From Piromyces finnis finn (Eukaryota > Fungi > Neocallimastigomycota), in contig MCFH01000029.1 in the NCBI GenBank assembly GCA_002104945.1, positions 124,001-188,000 of the forward strand: DNA of 64,000 nucleotides. Direction: 5' to 3'. Position 1 is the first letter of the stretch; each line of letters begins with the position of its first letter. The notes under the pieces were generated by a model. That model was not told where the DNA came from. It made no database searches and saw nothing but the letters and a program-made list of their open reading frames with translations. The translations under genes were made by a program, and so were the position numbers. Shown piece after piece: positions 13,238 through 28,106 of the stretch.

Positions 13238-14424
13238 AAACATTTACACTTGTGATAAAAAAAAATAGTTCTTAACAATAAATATTCACTTAGGATCATA
13301 TAGATAAATGAATAGGGTTAGAATAAATATAATTTAATAGTTTTTAATTAACTAATAAATAAAAATTATCAATGTGTAAGATTTTAATTAGAAAGTTTTT
13401 CCTAATATACTTTTCTTTTTTTTTTTTTTTTTTGTTGTTGTTGTTGTTATCTTTTTAAATGGATTGATAGGTAAAACGTAATAACTAACATTTTTTAATA
13501 GATGATTAGCATAACATTATTAATATATTTAATAGTATTAAGAGTTAGTACAACAATTTAAGCATACAAAAAGACACTCTACAAGAAGCATTTGTTATAG
13601 TAATTTAATAATACTTATTCTATTCTTGAAATAAATAAATCTTAACTTGTTAAGTTATTGGTTTCTTTAGAGATAAAAATTATAAAATTATATAACATTT
13701 GTTTTTTTTTTTTGTTTTTTTTTTTTTTTGTGATTTTTTGTATCAAACATTCCAATAGCTTTCACTTTTTTTTTTATATATATATACTTTCTAACAAAAA
13801 ATAAGATATTAAATCGTTGTAAAAAAAAAAAATTAAAAAAAAAAAAATGATAATAATAATAAAATAAAAAGTTAACCATTTATATATAAAGCAGTACTTT
13901 TAATTTTTTTAATTTTTTTCTCATTTTTATTTTTAAAAAATTATTTATAATAATTTATATTATATATAAAAAAAATAAAAAAAATAAAAAAAAATTCAAA
14001 AATATATAATATTCCTTTAAAAAATGATGAATTTTAGTTAAGAATAAGATAATTGGTATCAGCCAAATTAAGAAAACATAATAGATTATATTTAATATAG
14101 ATATTATCAAAATTTGGCAATATCATTATTTCTTTACAAAATCAACTTTTGGAACATATAATTCTTTTTTTTTTAAAAAAAAAAAAAATAGTTATTAGGT
14201 ACATCTTTTGATTTTAATTTGGTTGCTTTTTTTTTGTTTGTTTGTTTGGTTGGTTGGTTTGTGTTTGACTTTTGCTTTTTGTTTTAACGGTTTTATAATT
14301 CTTTGTAAAATTAATAGTTATTATAGATTATTATTATTATTAAATATTGTATTTTTTTTTTTTTTTTTTTTACAATTGTTATTTTTTTGTTTTAAACAAA
14401 AAAAAAAGGGGGGGTTAGTAAATT

Positions 14425-17400
14425 TTAAAGTAAAATACCATCTACATTGTTCTTGGTAATTTTAATTTTATTAAGGTCTTTTTCGTTAAATTTATTTAAA
14501 TTAATTCTTAAGCTACTATCTTCACTATTTTCATAAGTGACGAATGTTTTTTTGGGTGAAGGAATATTAATGTGAACTTGTTTAGGACTTCTTAATAAAC
14601 CATCCTTAGAAACTCCTGGATTAACAGTAGCTGAAGGTCTTGTATTAGATACACTAAGATAAAGTGGACTCATTCGTTTTAACCCAAATTTATTACGCGT
14701 AGTACTAGAAGTAAACTTTGGCGATGATATAACTTGACCAACTAAAGATGGACTACTAATTAATCCACTACTAGTTTTACTGGATCGAGCATTATTCTTT
14801 ACTTCAAAATTAAAACTAGCTTCAACTATATTACTAACTTCTGTTACAATTTCCTCATTTTTACCAACACTACTTACGCTTATGTCCATATCTTGCATGG
14901 CTTGACTTCCACCTACATTACTAATATTTGGGACAGCTGAAATTCTATCTATTGATTCATTTGCGTCATCAATACTTGTTAAACTAATATCTGGTTCTTC
15001 GATCTTAGAAAGATAGGATAATCCCATCTTTTTATTTATATCATCCTTAGAAACAATCATACCAGAAGCGGCAGTAATTGAATTAATTTCACCACTTTCT
15101 TCATCAATACCACCTAAACTCATACTTAATGGTTGACCTGATTCTGTACTAATTTCAGTAGGATTCACGGTTGGTGATCTAGAAAGAGGACTGCCAAGTA
15201 ATCCAGTTGTTTGAACATCAAAAGACTTTGATGGATGCGTAGCATAAGATTTTGATGGCTGTTGAGCATCAAAAGAACGACGACCACATTGATTATTCTT
15301 CGATTTAGAAAGTTGGACATCAAATGATCTTGAATATGATTTGTCATTTAATTGAGAATCGCATGTTGTGGTTAAGGAGGATAGATTATGATCTGGAACT
15401 TCATTTTGATTAGCATAACCTACAAATTGATTATTTCTTAAATTATTTAGAGTCCTAAGGTATAAATCTTTATTTAATTCAACATTGCCGCCTGCATCAA
15501 AGAAATTTTTTTGTCGTGATGAGGAAAAAGAATGGATTGTTGATAAAGTGTCATTTTTTGAATCTAAACTTTTAAAGCTGGTATTTTGTAGTAAAGACGA
15601 CTCATTATGATTATTGTCTTTGTTTTGTGATGGATGGCCCAAATATAAATTTTGTGGGGAAGAAAATGGTGGTACATGGTCAAAATCATCTCTTTGATCA
15701 TGATTATAATCTGATGATTGCGAATGGCTCAATGAAGAACGATGAAGATAGGTTCTGGAACCACGATCTAAATTAACATTCTCATAATTATTATAATAAT
15801 CAATTTTATAATTAGTATTTAAATAGGTAGCAGAATTTGCCATATCAGATGACATTCTTATTCTTTTGGTATTACTTTCCTTTCTTCTTTTTACTATACA
15901 ATAAATTAAAAATGAAATCAAAAGTAAAAGTAGCAATATAATGATAATTAATATAACGGTCCATTTATTAGACTTTTTTGAAGATTTTTCAAAAATATAC
16001 GGATCATCGACTTCTTTTTGAGTTTCTACTTCATAGGTAGTAACGGATAATCTAAGTTTTCCATTTTCTTTTTTAAAATCTAATACCCCAAAGGTTGCGG
16101 TGAAAGTTTGATTATAGTATTGTATATAGTCTGGAGTATCTTCAATAAATCCAAAAAATTTACTACCTGTCGAACAATTTGCAGTGATGTAAAGTGTTCC
16201 TTTTGGATCATTATAAACTTTATTCTTTTCAATCTCATTAATTTTATAAGGATCATAATACTTTTGTGAATATGAAATAAAATGAGATGTAGAGTAAACA
16301 TGATCATGCCCATTAATAACCAAATCAAATGCATTCTCATAAAATAATTCAGTTAAACACGGACGTAAAGTATTTGTGATATATTCTTCCTTGGAATGTG
16401 TATTACCATTTCCATAAATATCATGATGAAACATTGCAATCCGCCAATCTGCTTCAGGATATTTATTTACAGCATCATTGATAACCTTTTCAAAATCTTC
16501 ACAATTATTATAATTGGTCTCTAATACAATAACTAATACATTATTATATTTAAAAAAATAACTATAACCAGGAATAATGCCACCAAAATCACGTTGTTGG
16601 GTGTACTTTGGTGTAGTAAATGCATTAGGGGGATTGAAATGATATCTATGATTATTTGTGTAAGACTCGTGATTTCCTACAGCAACAGCGGAGGGAATAG
16701 TTTTTAACAATTCCGGAAGAAGAAATGCAGAATATTGAGTTTCTTGATTAAAATGATTTTCATCATTCATTTCATAACAATCAGTATCTGCTTGATCACC
16801 AGCAGATAAAAATACACTTGGTTCCTTTGTATAGACAAAAGAATTAGTAACAGTCAAGTTCCAATTGAAAGCATCATTTCTTGTACCTTCTGAAACTGTT
16901 AATGGTTTGGTTTTATTTGAAACAGAAAGACGACCATTGGAACCACCGATTTGTGGATCACCAACAAAAATGAAGTTAAAATTATCAGGATCATAAGTAG
17001 AAAACTTAACTGGATCTTCCCATTCACCATTCAAATTTCTTTGGTAATAATATGTTGACTTACGATTTAATCCAGTAATAGTAACTTTATTAGAATAATA
17101 TGGTGTACCCACTAATTCTTTAAAATATGTATTAACTCCTGAAAATTCTTTTGCGTCAGACATATCTTCATTTAAACTATAACGAATTAATGGTAAGATA
17201 GCGGTTGTAGAGTACCAACCAAAATTAAGCATAGATTCATCTTCACCAACAAAAACAGAAAGACGTTCAAAATTATTTTTATATTCATTATCCCATTTTT
17301 GTTTAAAAGCGTTCCATTCATTTCTTGTTGCATCAACTTTTTCACGATCATTCCATCTTGATGTACTATTCCTAAATCCACACCAATTATCATTTTCTAA

Positions 17401-18050
17401 ACCCCTATTAAACGTCATATAGTATTAAAAGATATACATTATTTAATACATAAAAAACTATTACATTATAAGAAAATATATTATTACCATTCTCCATCCA
17501 TATTTATTATTTCTCTTTTTCCATTATCATTTAGACAACATCCATAGCCTTGGTCTATTTAATTAAATTTAAAAGAAAAAAAAAAAAAAAAACATTAATA
17601 TCAATATATTATAAATATTTATTAATAAATTTATAAAAATTTATTTTTTTTAAACCTATATAATTTGCCCAACAATATTCATTAGAATCGGCATTCGAGG
17701 TGTTTATATTACTTTCAGATATAATACCACACCAGCTATAATTTTCTAAACCCCTGAATATTATAATATATTATAAAAGTTAACTACTTGAATTTTTATG
17801 CTTTATTATTAGCTGTATATAAATACTATACCAAGAACCTCTATTATCAGTAAAGTCAATCTTTACTCCTGGCGAACAGCTAATATATAAAATTATAATG
17901 TTAATTTATTTATCTTTTTTAGAACAATAATATAATTATTTCACAACTATAAAATGATTATTACCAAGGAAAATTATATTGTTCTGACCAACATTCATCT
18001 GACTTGGCATATGAAATTAGCAGTAATATCCCAAGAATTATATTTTTCAT
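14425..18050 (-). CDS. Signal peptide + 2 fungal dockerin domains + FN3/purple-acid-phosphatase-like metallophosphoesterase + TM helix + long Ser-rich cytoplasmic tail (1092 aa, 5 exons)
   Basis: Exons 18050-17965, 17879-17832, 17753-17656, 17554-17488 and 17404-14425 splice in frame (3279 nt). N-terminus MKNIILGILLLISYAKS; dockerins CWSEQYNFPCCSPGVKIDFTDNRGSWGLENYSWCG and CWANYIDQGYGCCLNDNGKREIINMDGEWGLENDNWCG. Calcineurin-like motifs GDPQ, GDQAD, GNHES, FHHD, GHDH. TM WTVILIIIILLLLLLISFLIYCIV followed by KRRK. Confidence 0.92.
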
Positions 18051-18563
18051 TTTTATTATTATTATTATTATTTATATTATTTTCATAAAAATGAATTATT
18101 TGTTTTTTTATTGTTTTTTTTTTTTATATAAATTTTATTATATTTTTTTTAATAAAAAAAAACTTTATATCTTTTTCTATTATTTAATAATTACAGAGTT
18201 TTCGAGATTTTTTAATTTATTTATTTAAATAAAAAAAAAAAGTGTGTTTAACTCAATTAAACAATACTATAAAAAATAATTATTTTACAATTTTAATATA
18301 ATTGTCATTTAAAATAAAATAACTATGTACAAATAAATTTTTAAATTTTAAATTTCTGATTGATTCTTAAATATTTTGAAAAAGCATAATAGATGATTAA
18401 TTTATCTAAAAAAATAAAATCTTGCTTTTTAAATAATTGAATAAAATATTTATTTGTTTTATTTTATCTTGTATTATTCCTTCTTTTTTTTTTTTTTAAT
18501 AGAATAAATAAATTATTTTTATATATTTAAAAATTATTATAAAACCAGTTTACTTTTATTTTC

Positions 18564-18720
<157 letters not shown>

Positions 18721-19338
18721 AAATCATATAATGGTTATACAACTAGGTATACTATCATTAAGTCAAATGCACAATATAAAATTTGAAATTTAAATTTTAG
18801 AATTTTTTGTCTTCAATTTTAAATTTGTTTCTTTTTCTTTAAAGAATAATTATTTGTTTTCCTTTCTTTTACAATTTCTGTTTTAATTTACTTTTTTAAT
18901 TATTTTATTTTATTTTTTAGTTTCTTTAAATTTTATTTAAAATACTAATATTTGTGTGTGCGTGTGTTTTTGGTGTGTGTCTTTTACGCAAATTTTGTTC
19001 ATTATTTTTTTTATTATCATAAAATAAAAAAAAAATGTTTAAAAAATTAGAATAAAAAAAAATGATAAAATTATAAAACTATAATAATTATTATTTTAAA
19101 AAAACATTATAATATAAAATTTAGCAATGTAATATGATAATAATCTAATATTATGATGGATATATTATATTATTTAAATTAAAACCAATATTACTATTAA
19201 ATTTAGAAGTGTAACACCACCAATAAAATATATAAAAAAACTGTATTTACTATTATTTTAAATTTCATTCTACTTTTTTAAAATTTATAAATATGATTGG
19301 TTAAAATATATTAAGAAAATTTGTTCATAATTTTTTGT

Positions 19339-23634: not shown

Positions 23635-26600
23635 GTTATTATAAGGAATTCTCTTTTTCTAAGTTTTATTATTTATCAAATTATTATTACTTTTTTTTTA
23701 TTATCTTCGATAGTGAAACAAATTTAAAACATTGCGTCTCTCTACCTCAACTATCTTTTTTACGTGGTATAGACGAATTTAATAATATAGAGTGTATTGT
23801 TCGATGTGAACCACCTAATGATAGTTTTTCATCATTTGATGGAACTATTTCTCTTCATAAATTAAATTCTTCAACATCTTCATCACAGGAATCAAGCTCA
23901 ACTGAACTCATACCTTCTGGTGATAGTAGTTATAATGATTCTAATAATAATAGTTGTACAACTGTTGATGTATCTGAAGAGAGTAGTTCCACTAACAGTC
24001 ATCGTCTTCATACACCACTAAAATATATTGAACGATATAATTCATTTAAAGCGAAAGCTTTTGATAAAGAGCTACCTATTTCTTCTGATCAAATTTTATT
24101 TAGAGGATCTGTTTTAAGAAATACTAATTGTATATATGCCTTATCACTTTATACTGGTAAAAACACCAGAATATTTTTAAATTCTAAACAAACTGGACTA
24201 AAGTTTAGTAGTACAGAACATAGAATAAATATGTTCCTAGTTATAATTATTATATTCAATATTATACTATTGGCTATATCCATAACTATTGATGTTAAGT
24301 TCAAAAGACGATTAAGAAAGAATCGTTCAAGATATGGTTCAAGAAATTATCATTGGTATTTAGATAAATATGAAAATCAATCAATTTTTGAGGACAGTAT
24401 TAAAAGTTTTTTTTCCTTTTTCGGATTGTATTCTTATCTTGTTCCAATAAGTATATTTGTTACTTTAGAAGGGGTTCGTGTCCTTCAAACAAAAATTATG
24501 GAATGGGATCATCGATTAATGGGAAAACGAATTGTTACTGTTCATCCAAATTCTGGTTCAAAAAATATTAATAATACTGTTATGAATCTTGATAATGATC
24601 CAAATCTACCTGAAAAATGTGACTCTAAAAGATCCACTTCTTCTACCGAATTACGATCAATCGAATCATTACAAGGTCGAAAAAATAATAAAAGTACAAG
24701 AAAGACAAAAAAAAATAATGAAAAAAAAATAAAAGCAGCTCATAATGATGAAAAATCCAATGAAGATATAAATAATGATAGTTCAAAAACATTGGAAACA
24801 CAATCCTTACTATCTGAATCCACTTCACTTCAATTAAAAGAAAAACATCTTACTGTACAAAATAATGGTAAACAACGTCAAGTGGAGCAACCATGTCAAG
24901 GTCAATTTAAAACAACAAAACAAATTGAATGGGTACCAATGAAAGCAAATAGTTTTAACCTTGGTGATGATTTAGGTCAAGTAGAATATATTTTTAGTGA
25001 TAAAACCGGTACATTAACACAAAATTTTATGAAACTTTCTAAATGGTGTATTAATGGGGTAGTTTTTGATGGATCTAATGATAATGAATGCTTTTCAAAG
25101 ATTATTCACAATAAAACTGAGATGGCTAATGATTCTGAAATGAATGACTATATATATGAATACTGTCGTGCTATTACTACATGTAATATGGTTATTCCAA
25201 CGCAAAATCATCAAAATAATCATATTGACTATGAAAGTCAATCACCAGATGAAGTAGCTCTTATCCAAGGATTAACTCGATGTGGTGTTCAACTTTTAAC
25301 CCATACCAAACATGATATTTCTATTCAAATTTTTGATGCTTATGAAGAATTTACGATCGAGATGTTAACTGAATTTTCTAGTGATCGTAAACGCATGAGT
25401 ATTATAGTAAAGGATAAAAATAACCAGTATACTCTTTATTGTAAGGGAGCTGATGATGTTATTATGGAAAGACTTTCTACCGATCCTAACGTAAATACAA
25501 AAAATTTGATAGCATCAACAAGATCTTCATTGAAAGAATTTAGTCAAAACGGTCTTAGATGTTTAGTAGTGGCAATGAGAAAATTTGATCAAGATGAAAT
25601 TGAACAATTTTTAGAACAATATAGAGTAGCCGAAAATAGTATTGGAAATCGTAATCAAAATGTTAATAAAGTTGTAAATTCTATTGAAAAAAATTTAAAA
25701 TTGCTGGGGGTCACAGCAATTGAAGATCAATTACAGGATGAAGTTCCAGAAACTATTGATTATTTGATTCATGTAACATTTAATATTTATATATATTTAT
25801 TATATTTTTATAATATATTCCTTAATTTAATCTTTTTTTTTTTTTTTTTTTTTATAATACTACTATTACTACTGTTACTATTACTAATACTATTCTTCTT
25901 CTTCTTCTTCTTCTTATTATATTTTTTTTTAAAATATTGCATAATTAAATCAATTAATATTTATTGCTATGATCATGTTTCATTATCCTAATAGTGTGGA
26001 ATAAAATTTTGGCTTTTAACAGGAGATAACCAAGATACAGCAATTAATATTGGATCTTCATCTAAATTAATTTCAAAAGATACAAATTTAATTGTTATTA
26101 ATGCTCATTCTGCTTCTCATTGTGGAAGACTTTTAGATAAACAAATTGCGAGAATGAAAGAAAGAGGAGAATGGGGTAGACTTTTTCTTGGTAAGCCTAA
26201 TTGTAATGATACTTCATTATGCGATCAAGAAAACTTTAAACCAAAAGATAATAAGTGTATTGAACATCTATGGAAAAAAAATGCTTTAGTTGTTTCTGGT
26301 ACAACACTTAAATTTATATTTGATCAAGATGTATTACCACCTTCAAATAATCAAGTTAATAGGAGTAAATTAAATGCCACTTTACCTAAACTAGATGATG
26401 ATGGCAATGTCATTGAAAACGGTCGAACGATAACAAAATTTAATCAATCCATGGAAAAAATATCTTTTATTCGCTGGATTAAAAATTTGTCTCATCGTAA
26501 ACGTTCAAGAACAATATATCCGGATGAGGATAATCAAGAAAATGAACCTAATGATGGTACAAAAAGTTTATTTTCGACAATTTCCAGTCGTTCCACAGCT

Positions 26601-28106
26601 TCATCCAACGATAAAAAGTCAAACAAGGAATCAATGTCCCTTTTACAGAAAAAGTTTGTTGAATTGGGTGTACGATGTCATTCTGTTATTTGTTGTCGTG
26701 CAACTCCATCTCAAAAAGCTAAAGTTGTTAATATTATCAAGACAAGTTTAAATAAAATGACTCTAGCCATTGGTGATGGTGCAAATGATGTTGCAATGAT
26801 TCAAAAGGCACATATTGGTATTGGTATTATTGGAAGAGAAGGAACACAAGCAATGCGTGCCAGTGATTATGCTATTTTAGAATTTAAATTTTTAAAAACT
26901 TTATTATGTATTCATGGTAGATATTCTTTTCTTAGAGTATCAAAAATGGTTTATCATTCATTTTATAAAAATTTCGTTTTATCTTTAATTCAATTTTTAT
27001 ATATGACAGTATCTTATTGGAGTGGATCTGTAAGTATCCTTACTAATATGTAAACTTTAAAATATCCATATATCAATATTGGTAGAGCTAATAAATCTAT
27101 ATTCCTTTATTTTTACTACTATTACCATAAACAGCTCGCGTATGAGTCTTATTTTAGAATGTCTTTTAATACTTTTTATACATCTGTATTTATATATATA
27201 TTATCTTGTTCAGATAAAGATGTCAGTTCAAAAACAATTAATGAAAATCCTGAATTGTATAAACAAATAATTAATAAAAAAAAAGGTTATTGGACTTCAA
27301 TAAAAACATTAGGTTGGTTAGCGGATGGAGTATGGCATTCATTTTGTATGTATTAGAGAAAAATTCATAAAAATAAGAATAATATTTAATAAAGATACTA
27401 ATTCTATTTTCATATACGACAGCTTGTTTTATCGGTACATATTTACTTTATTCTGATATTACTCTTAAAAATGATGAAATTGTCACTACAAGTTATGTAG
27501 GAATATGTTACTTTTTTGGAAATATTTTACTTTTTGTTACAATGATTAAAAATTTCTTAATTACTAGTTCATTTAATTACTTTTCATTATTTGGAATTAT
27601 TTTCACTTTCACCTTTTATTTATTTGATAAATATATTGTTGATTTTCACATCAATAAAGATTATTTAATTACACCAGAATATCGAACAATATCATTTTAC
27701 TTATCGTCATTATTAATTGTTATCACAAGTCTTTTACCAGATCTTGCTATTTTATAGTAAGTATAATTTTATAATAATAATAATAATAATTACTCTATGG
27801 ACTACGAAATTAATCGCTTTTATTTTTTTTAATAGCATCAAAGAAATATTTTACCCTTCAGACAACACAATTTTCCAAGAAATTGAATACTTAGAAAAAC
27901 AAAAATTAAAAAAACAGAAAAAAAGCAAAAAAATTTCAGACTTTAATTATTCTAATAATCTATTAAAATCTAATAATTCTAAGGAAAAAATACTATCAAA
28001 TGAACACACTCAAAATAATAATCTATATTCTGACAGTAAAAATGAAGACAATTATAACAATAATTTATTAAATCAGTTAGAATATGAAGATTATAAAAAT
28101 GTTTAA
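22372..28106 (+). CDS. P4-type ATPase (phospholipid flippase), multi-exon
   Basis: NYVKTTKYTLFTFLP; ETSDLDGETNLK; LVPISIFVTLE; YIFSDKTGTLTQN (phosphorylation site); YESQSPDEVAL; FSSDRKRMS; CKGAD; GVTAIEDQLQD; VICCRATPSQKA; LAIGDGANDVAMIQKAHIGIGIIGREGTQA; SDYAI..F..L..LLCIHGRYSF. Confidence 0.95.

Follow-up and report, generated by a model that had tools for sequence, protein, structure and literature searches.

A gene of the gut fungus Piromyces finnis (contig MCFH01000029.1) encodes a protein whose architecture can be given with near certainty: a signal peptide, two dockerins, a metallophosphoesterase with the fold of purple acid phosphatases, one membrane helix and a tail of 492 residues. 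The gene is located within a stretch of 64,000 nucleotides, positions 124,001 to 188,000 of the forward strand of the contig, which we call the window and to which all coordinates refer. Taken as a whole, the protein is best explained as a type-I plasma-membrane phosphoesterase of P. finnis, an explanation that we regard as moderately probable. Its functional reading as a cell-surface phosphoesterase that is docked to scaffoldin and equipped with a tail for regulation or trafficking is, in our judgement, an even call. The gene and its enzyme family are already annotated, hence we do not report the discovery of a missed gene; the novel part is the membrane helix together with the orphan, conserved tail.

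The only strongly hydrophobic segment after the N-terminus comprises residues 582-600 (TVILIIIILLLLLLISFLI; 15904-15960, minus strand), which reach a Kyte-Doolittle value of 3.55 and are directly followed by the positively charged stretch KRRKESNTKRIR. By these heuristics, the protein is predicted to have a type-I single-pass topology with the dockerins and the enzyme outside and the tail inside. A helix behind the enzyme was found in seven of the 61 fungal family members (P0001-P0006 and P0010) and is absent from the other 54. Five of the helix proteins also have the long tail (P0001, P0002, P0003, P0004 and P0005), which is present in the fragment P0121 as well, and in the remaining two, P0006 and P0010, which form a sister subclade, only approximately 36 residues follow the helix. 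The short-tail form represents a complete open reading frame (ORF) with all exons in one frame (L024:153-2093). Hence, membrane anchoring seems to be useful also without a long tail. The ORF downstream of this short-tail gene was considered as a frame-shifted tail and rejected, because it is a profilin gene (2419-2781) situated 300 nucleotides further downstream. None of 19 canonical dockerin ORFs from about 95 dockerin genes contained a strongly hydrophobic segment, which is weak evidence, since the number is small and only helices in the same ORF are visible in this comparison. Furthermore, no paper on a transmembrane dockerin phosphoesterase or on any long-tailed transmembrane enzyme with dockerins was found in a search that excluded the paper with the parts list of the fungal cellulosome.

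The tail (residues 601-1092; 14428-15903, minus strand) is rich in Ser (16.7%) and Asn (10.6%) and predicted to be disordered. In the alignment of the tails, at least four of the five sequences agree in one third of the columns, and these columns are clustered in 14 short blocks, among them RQKNFFDAGxNVExNKDLYLRTLN at residues 730-758, KIEEPDISL, TTEVGNIVExSFNFEVK and FGLKRMSPLYL. Moreover, three [RK]SFDxQ repeats and eight Ser/Thr-Pro sites are found in the tail, which terminates with NVDxILL, the last residues V-D-x-I-L-L being invariant. Its AlphaFold model has a mean predicted local distance difference test (pLDDT) score of 39.6 with short helices at approximately 741-756 and 886-892 and a better-scoring C-terminus; this low score is weak evidence for disorder, because the underlying alignment comprises only five sequences. 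The ratio of nonsynonymous to synonymous substitutions (dN/dS, Nei-Gojobori) in the comparison with Piromyces sp. E2 is 0.375 in the tail, compared with 0.21 in the ectodomain, and in the comparison with Anaeromyces robustus, where dS is near saturation, it is 0.54 and 0.30, respectively. The tail is single-copy in the P. finnis genome and has no match in Pfam. No relative beyond the orthogroup appeared in a word search restricted to the tail or in the ESM Atlas, and an exhaustive profile search of 1.84 billion protein representatives returned only three matches, all of them members of the orthogroup. The tail is thus a selected, lineage-specific and probably disordered region that carries short linear motifs. 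Because the helix and the tail are conserved in several genera and selection acts on the tail, the latter is regarded as a functional part of the protein and not as junk.

The coding sequence is situated on the minus strand and runs from 18050 to 14425, exactly the span assigned to it in a preliminary description of the window, with the ATG at 18050-18048 and the stop codon at 14427-14425. The product of 1092 residues is encoded by five exons that are separated by four GT..AG introns of 85, 78, 101 and 83 nucleotides with a GC content of 5-17%. Exon 1 (17965-18050) has the translation MKNIILGILLLISYAKSDECWSEQYNFP and comprises the start codon, the signal peptide (residues 1-17; 18000-18050) and the start of dockerin 1 (CWSEQYNFP). 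Cleavage probably occurs after AKS, which gives the N-terminus MKNIILGILLLISYAKS|DEC. Intron 1 (17880-17964) splits the codon of C29, exon 2 (17832-17879) encodes the middle of dockerin 1 (CSPGVKIDFTDNRGS), and intron 2 (17754-17831) is inserted within the Trp codon of WG(L)EN, W45. The end of dockerin 1 (GLENYSWCGI), a linker and the start of dockerin 2 (CWANYI) are encoded by exon 3 (17656-17753; GLENYSWCGIISESNINTSNADSNEYCWANYI), which is followed by intron 3 (17555-17655; split codon D78) and by exon 4 (17488-17554) with the middle of dockerin 2 (QGYGCCLNDNGKREIINMDGE). Intron 4 (17405-17487) again lies within the Trp codon of WG(L)EN, in this case W100, and its position in dockerin 2 is homologous to that of intron 2 in dockerin 1. 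Exon 5 (14425-17404) encodes the end of dockerin 2, the whole ectodomain, the transmembrane helix and the tail including the stop codon. It belongs to an ORF of 997 codons (14425-17418), which is the only large one between 6 kb and 24 kb of the window. All exon translations are exact, in-order substrings of the public 1092-residue protein P0001, which was retrieved as 100% identical by a word search with exon 5 and is named 'Metallo-dependent phosphatase [Piromyces finnis]', in UniRef 'Purple acid phosphatase', with the precomputed Pfam domains CBM_10, Metallophos and Pur_ac_phosph_N. The five-exon model therefore equals the deposited annotation.

Four sequencing runs (X1-X4, from three studies) contain 56-81% of the sampled words of the gene stretch. 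Their contigs were aligned to positions 14200-18300 and provide information neither on expression level nor on transcript ends. In X1, X2 and X4, a single contig of 323-464 nucleotides covers the pieces 17487-17554, 17656-17752, 17831-17879 and 17965-18035, whose record coordinates are adjacent; in X1 and X2 it also extends over 17269-17403. The pieces of exon 1 stop at 17965. The contig of X3 has the same pieces except for 17831-17879, which is unlisted in the piece table. Exons 2, 3 and 4 are hence covered by contigs, and one contig of 433 nucleotides links all five exons. Three of the joints are listed in the joint table, namely those across intron 1 (17879/17965) and intron 2 (17752/17831), both in X1-X4, and across intron 4 (17403/17487), in X1-X3. 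The joint across intron 3 was dropped there because of a T-run repeat at 17557-17608, and is evident from the piece table, in which 17487-17554 and 17656-17752 adjoin in the records of three runs. Furthermore, X2 contains a contig of 2880 nucleotides that spans 14423-17287 without any gap or difference, i.e. the catalytic domain, the helix, the whole tail and the stop codon. The preliminary description had proposed that four small 5' exons add the signal peptide and the dockerins, and had asked for proof of the splice junctions: the exons are borne out by the public protein and by the spliced contigs, in which all four introns are removed. It had also described the exons as missed by the list of ORFs, which is true for such a raw list only, as the identical spliced model was already public. 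Transcripts that end before the helix or lack the dockerin exons were named there as a way in which the model could fail; the two contigs of 2880 and 433 nucleotides span these regions.

Within the contigs of X1-X4, there is no sign of an isoform without the helix. A single X1 contig has a loose end of 149 letters that departs from the gene at 16057, approximately 30 codons ahead of the helix. It probably stems from a paralogue or a chimeric contig, and an alternative secreted isoform was rejected, because no GT donor exists at 16057 on the coding strand and because the spikes at 15113 and 17381 are cross-matches of dockerin sequences. Depth spikes and loose ends at the latter two positions are caused by abundant dockerin transcripts which have short WG(V/L)EN..WCGI-coding stretches in common. 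Contigs of very high depth (word depth 1400-1900 in X2) overlap the gene briefly at 15022-15158 and 17351-17487 and continue as other dockerin-coding sequence, reading ...WGVENDQWCGI... or ...WCGIQETSAAE.... Hence, the deep matches at these two places are cross-matching abundant cellulosomal transcripts and do not represent expression of the phosphoesterase gene. X4, from a study of 2022, differs from the window at six positions within the gene (14543-16004), all of them transitions, which points to another strain of P. finnis.

In the ectodomain, an N-terminal beta-sandwich of the purple-acid-phosphatase type (residues 152-236; 16996-17250, minus strand), where the strands of the model fall, is followed by a binuclear metallophosphoesterase catalytic domain (residues 244-470; 16294-16974, minus strand). 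In Pfam searches with P0001, the former matched Pur_ac_phosph_N (PF16656) with 31.4 bits at a cut-off of 30 and the latter Metallophos (PF00149) with 51.7 bits at a cut-off of 21.5. The catalytic motifs read GD249, GD303QAD306, GN344H345E, FH426H427 and GH466DH468, with H436 in addition; D249, D303, N344/H345, H426 and H466/H468 of motifs I-V as well as H436 are invariant in all seven proteins of the membrane clade. The AlphaFold model of residues 100-580 has a mean pLDDT of 87.7 and matches the purple acid phosphatase of kidney bean with Z 33 over approximately 380 residues (root-mean-square deviation 3.1, 19% identity). This match covers positions 20-478 of the model, i.e. beta-sandwich and catalytic domain. 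Foldseek found purple acid phosphatases with an E value of about 1e-20, and the sequence search of the PDB gave an E value of 0.007 with the single protein and 2.5e-10 with a profile. In the family profile, the H286 and GHxH motifs (motifs IV and V) align with the plant enzyme.

Motif II, G302-D303-Q-A-D306, deviates from the GDxxY of purple acid phosphatases, as read from the order and spacing of the motifs rather than by superposing residues. All proteins of the membrane clade have D306, and the wider fungal and bacterial family has the consensus GDQID. By this motif reading, the defining tyrosinate ligand appears to be replaced by Asp throughout the fungal and bacterial family. The Tyr ligand to Fe(III) gives purple acid phosphatases their colour and their name. 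Because of the Asp at its site, the protein was filed as a binuclear metallophosphoesterase of the purple-acid-phosphatase fold and not as a purple acid phosphatase proper. The two-domain purple acid phosphatases of plants, such as those of kidney bean (4DHL, 1KBP) and sweet potato (1XZW) and the wheat phytase (6GIT), have the same combination of beta-sandwich and binuclear domain. They match the ectodomain model with Z 28-33 over approximately 380 residues, root-mean-square deviations of about 3.1 and 15-21% identity (the matches with Z 33 include 4DHL, 6HWR and 1KBP), and share motifs I, III, IV and V and a His that corresponds to their phosphate-binding His. However, the plant enzymes have GDxxY where the fungal protein has GDQAD without the Tyr ligand, and they possess neither dockerins nor helix nor tail.

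Both dockerins have diverged, as indicated by scores of 19-47 bits with the CBM_10 profile (PF02013; cut-off 23) compared to 55-69 bits for the canonical dockerins of the P. finnis genome. Dockerin 1 (residues 19-55; 17723-17996, minus strand) is cut by introns 1 and 2 and scores 46.8 bits within the whole protein (E 4e-12) and 45.1 bits alone, thus above the cut-off. Dockerin 2 (residues 72-109; 17377-17674, minus strand) is cut by introns 3 and 4 and reaches alone 19.3 bits (E 0.0016) over positions 2-35 of the 36 positions of the profile. Nevertheless, the pattern of Cys and Trp residues is kept in both dockerins across the membrane-clade orthologues, and in the orthologue of A. robustus two CBM_10 stretches pass with 66 bits. 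The intron inside the Trp codon of WG-x-EN occurs in both dockerins, and the exon structure is kept across genera. Pfam did not detect any dockerin on single exons, because two introns cut each dockerin module. A CBM_10 scan of the genome was considered for the best 150 of 561 candidates, and the phosphoesterase gene was not among them. The dockerins in these best 150 are uninterrupted matches in a single frame, compared with which intron-split dockerins are unusual.

Dockerins on phosphoesterases are routine in gut fungi. A word search yielded 61 gut-fungal relatives from P. finnis, Piromyces sp. E2, A. robustus, Neocallimastix californiae, Orpinomyces and metatranscriptomes, nearly all of them with CBM_10 and many with CBM1 as well, and dockerin-bearing 'serine and threonine protein phosphatases' were already listed in an Orpinomyces transcriptome of 2015 (PMC4672494). 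The P. finnis genome contains ten family copies; one contig carries five in tandem and another three. Of the ten, only the gene described here has the tail, the nine others being without the helix. The secreted DOC2/CBM1 metallophosphoesterases of Neocallimastigomycota, for instance the P. finnis paralogues P0012, P0013, P0017, P0021 and P0023, annotated as 'Metallo-dependent phosphatase / Purple acid phosphatase / Non-catalytic module family DOC2', belong to the same catalytic family with 53-62% identity, have the same N-terminal tandem dockerins and fall into the same single fungal clade. In contrast to the membrane copy, they have no helix and no tail and often end in extra dockerins and CBM1, which the membrane copy lacks at its C-terminus. 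The preliminary description had seen two dockerins, a phosphatase ectodomain, a single helix and a long Ser-rich tail, and had contrasted this with the usual place of fungal dockerins on secreted CAZymes. Ectodomain, helix and tail are confirmed by the domain scores, the fold match, the hydropathy and the unbroken transcript; of the dockerins, the first passes the profile and the second shares the Cys/Trp pattern and stays below the cut-off on its own. The combination of dockerins and phosphoesterase turned out to be common, whereas the helix, in only seven of 61 members, and the tail, which is restricted to the orthogroup, are distinctive.

The nearest relatives outside fungi are bacterial (Lachnospiraceae, Niameybacter, Clostridium and metagenomes; 27-39% identity). 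Some of them carry SLH, Dockerin_1, FN3, FIVAR or choice-of-anchor I domains; judged from their SLH, Dockerin_1, FN3 and choice-of-anchor domains, they are extracellular, surface-exposed or cellulosome-bound enzymes. The closest, clostridial metallophosphoesterases (P0062-P0120), are 30-39% identical over the whole ectodomain and share the core of Pur_ac_phosph_N and Metallophos. Part of them are cellulosomal via a bacterial dockerin or wall-anchored via SLH; the anchoring modules are, however, unrelated to the fungal ones, and the enzymes are likewise uncharacterised. A maximum-likelihood tree built from 113 catalytic regions unites all fungal copies in one clade (support 100), which is connected to the bacterial sequences by a long branch (1.25). 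This makes one ancient acquisition from Bacillota, most probably Clostridia, with subsequent expansion the probable origin of the family, and probable only, because the tree is unrooted and includes no other fungi. The 'trifunctional nucleotide phosphoesterase' of a paper on horizontal transfer could not be equated with the gut-fungal family.

The helix proteins are the closest relatives of P0001 and are nested among the secreted paralogues, so that one change of state suffices on the tree. Orthologues exist in Piromyces sp. E2 (P0002), in A. robustus (P0005) and in Neocallimastix (P0004, a cluster mate of ORY66872.1, from N. californiae and N. lanati), and those of Piromyces sp. E2, Anaeromyces and Neocallimastix retain the helix and the 14 tail blocks. 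P. finnis, Piromyces sp. E2 and A. robustus share their intron positions; for intron 1 the match is with A. robustus, as the partial model of Piromyces sp. E2 begins just past it. In A. robustus (L003:1-2404), the membrane orthologue is situated approximately 3.6 kb downstream of a secreted paralogue (687 residues, dockerins and CBM1) on the same strand, which suggests that the membrane form arose by tandem duplication. Two adjoining ORFs of the window (24231-27053, plus strand) with Cation_ATPase and PhoLip_ATPase_C are pieces of a gene for a phospholipid-flipping P4-ATPase. Such a gene also flanks the Piromyces sp. E2 orthologue (L002:1-97), hence the local gene order is conserved. About 500 nucleotides upstream of the gene start, an ORF of 71 codons (18527-18742, minus strand) consists almost entirely of Asn codons (an AAT run) and is probably noncoding low-complexity DNA.

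According to the scenario we favour, the protein would have originated inside the gut-fungal radiation of secreted phosphoesterases tagged with dockerins and CBM1, when one copy gained a helix and a new tail. It would reside in the plasma membrane with the enzyme outside and hydrolyse extracellular organophosphates directly at the membrane, so that phosphate is released near uptake systems. The dockerins may keep the protein on scaffoldin or, equally, may retain scaffoldin at the cell surface. With its short motifs, Ser/Thr-Pro sites and hydrophobic C-terminus, the disordered tail would govern trafficking, turnover or phospho-regulation rather than act as a folded enzyme domain. Anchoring or sensing of the cellulosome, scavenging of phosphate or phytate and inward signalling, all suggested in the preliminary description, are neither supported nor refuted by the computational results, and the conservation of helix and tail and the selection on the tail speak in their favour.

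Several points weigh against this interpretation. Dockerin 2 stays below the Pfam cut-off and dockerin 1 has Phe where the orthologues have the Tyr of GYxCC, for which reasons the binding to scaffoldin may be weakened. For the signal peptide and the topology, hydropathy and the positive-inside rule take the place of a dedicated predictor, a single origin of the helix has low support (55), and the alignment behind the tail model is shallow with its five sequences. The runs X1-X4 were called RNA by guess alone; it is from the joints without introns that their origin from complementary DNA follows. NCBIfam contains no model for the family, as searched with the ectodomain and two bacterial relatives. 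To our knowledge, there is no family member, fungal or bacterial, with a measured substrate, metal content, topology, localisation or dockerin binding.

Two kinds of known membrane proteins are comparable. The first are fungal scaffoldins of the ScaA family, i.e. parts of the cellulosome that are held in the membrane via a C-terminal helix (PMC8262932). Scaffoldins bear the cohesin-like repeats which receive dockerins, whereas the P. finnis protein bears the dockerins themselves and an enzyme. The second is GAP50 of Plasmodium (3TGH), which combines the purple-acid-phosphatase fold with a single-pass membrane anchor and matches the ectodomain model with Z 23.6. GAP50 no longer has its metal ligands and serves as a structural anchor whose tail is very short; the P. 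finnis protein, by contrast, has intact ligands and 492 residues behind the helix. By analogy, a mainly structural protein could be envisaged, in which dockerins on a membrane stalk hold free scaffoldin or cellulosome at the surface of rhizoids or zoospores and the phosphoesterase is mostly a spacer. Fungal scaffoldins are known both with and without transmembrane anchors (PMC8262932), and those without would need a tether. The Cys and Trp pattern kept in the dockerins of all membrane-clade orthologues would suit such a tether, as does the presence of GAP50 among the structural matches. However, the invariance of the metal-ligand and phosphate-binding residues in the clade together with the ectodomain dN/dS of 0.21 argues for a working enzyme rather than a spacer, and the dockerin scores fall short of the canonical range. 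Anchoring and catalysis can also coexist. A mainly structural role thus appears unlikely to us.

The long tail is unique to the orthogroup, contains blocks that are conserved between genera and evolves under purifying selection, which invites the idea of a receptor-like sensor. Hydrolysis outside or engagement with scaffoldin would be relayed via the helix to partners of the tail, and contact with the plant wall or the phosphate status would thereby influence expression or growth; the many Ser/Thr-Pro sites and the repeated [RK]SFDxQ motifs are potentially phosphorylated. On the other hand, Pfam detects no kinase, phosphatase, GAF, cyclase or other signalling domain, the tail is predicted to be disordered, and its conserved short motifs would suit sorting or endocytosis equally well. 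P0006 and P0010 moreover keep the helix with hardly any tail in a complete ORF. We regard a sensor as quite improbable. The same holds for a transmembrane bridge, a doubtful proposal in which the dockerins would engage scaffoldin on the fibre and the tail motifs would recruit endocytic, cytoskeletal or kinase partners inside. Finally, the tail or the dockerin exons might belong to another gene or be untranslated, with an ordinary secreted phosphoesterase as the real product. Assembly breaks near the AT-rich helix region in some runs (pieces of X1 stop at 15925 and resume at 15957) and the X1 contig that diverges at 16057 could be read in this way. Nevertheless, this artefact is close to refuted, given the one open frame of 992 codons in AT-rich DNA, the single X2 contig across catalytic domain, helix and tail, the contig that links all five exons, the missing GT donor at 16057, and the conservation of helix and tail in four other species with dN/dS below 1.

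The enzyme family, with ten copies in this genome, dozens across gut fungi and kin in cellulosomal Clostridia, places phosphoester hydrolysis on the surface of plant fibres, where phytate, nucleic acids or biofilm DNA, and phospholipids are possible substrates. Within this family, the weight of the finding depends on the tail. If it is a mere sorting signal, the finding shrinks to an unusual paralogue of an annotated family. Should the bridge be true, anaerobic fungi would possess a dedicated mechanism by which their cellulosomes are held, recycled or sensed, based on a cytoplasmic module without known protein counterpart. For the question how the cell surface holds fungal cellulosomes and whether signals from them reach the cell, on which localisation work failed to co-localise the signals of scaffoldin and dockerin (PMC8262932), the gene represents a conserved and transcribed candidate: a membrane-fixed dockerin protein with a large cytoplasmic part under selection, and hence a reasonable lead on the coupling of cellulosome and cell.

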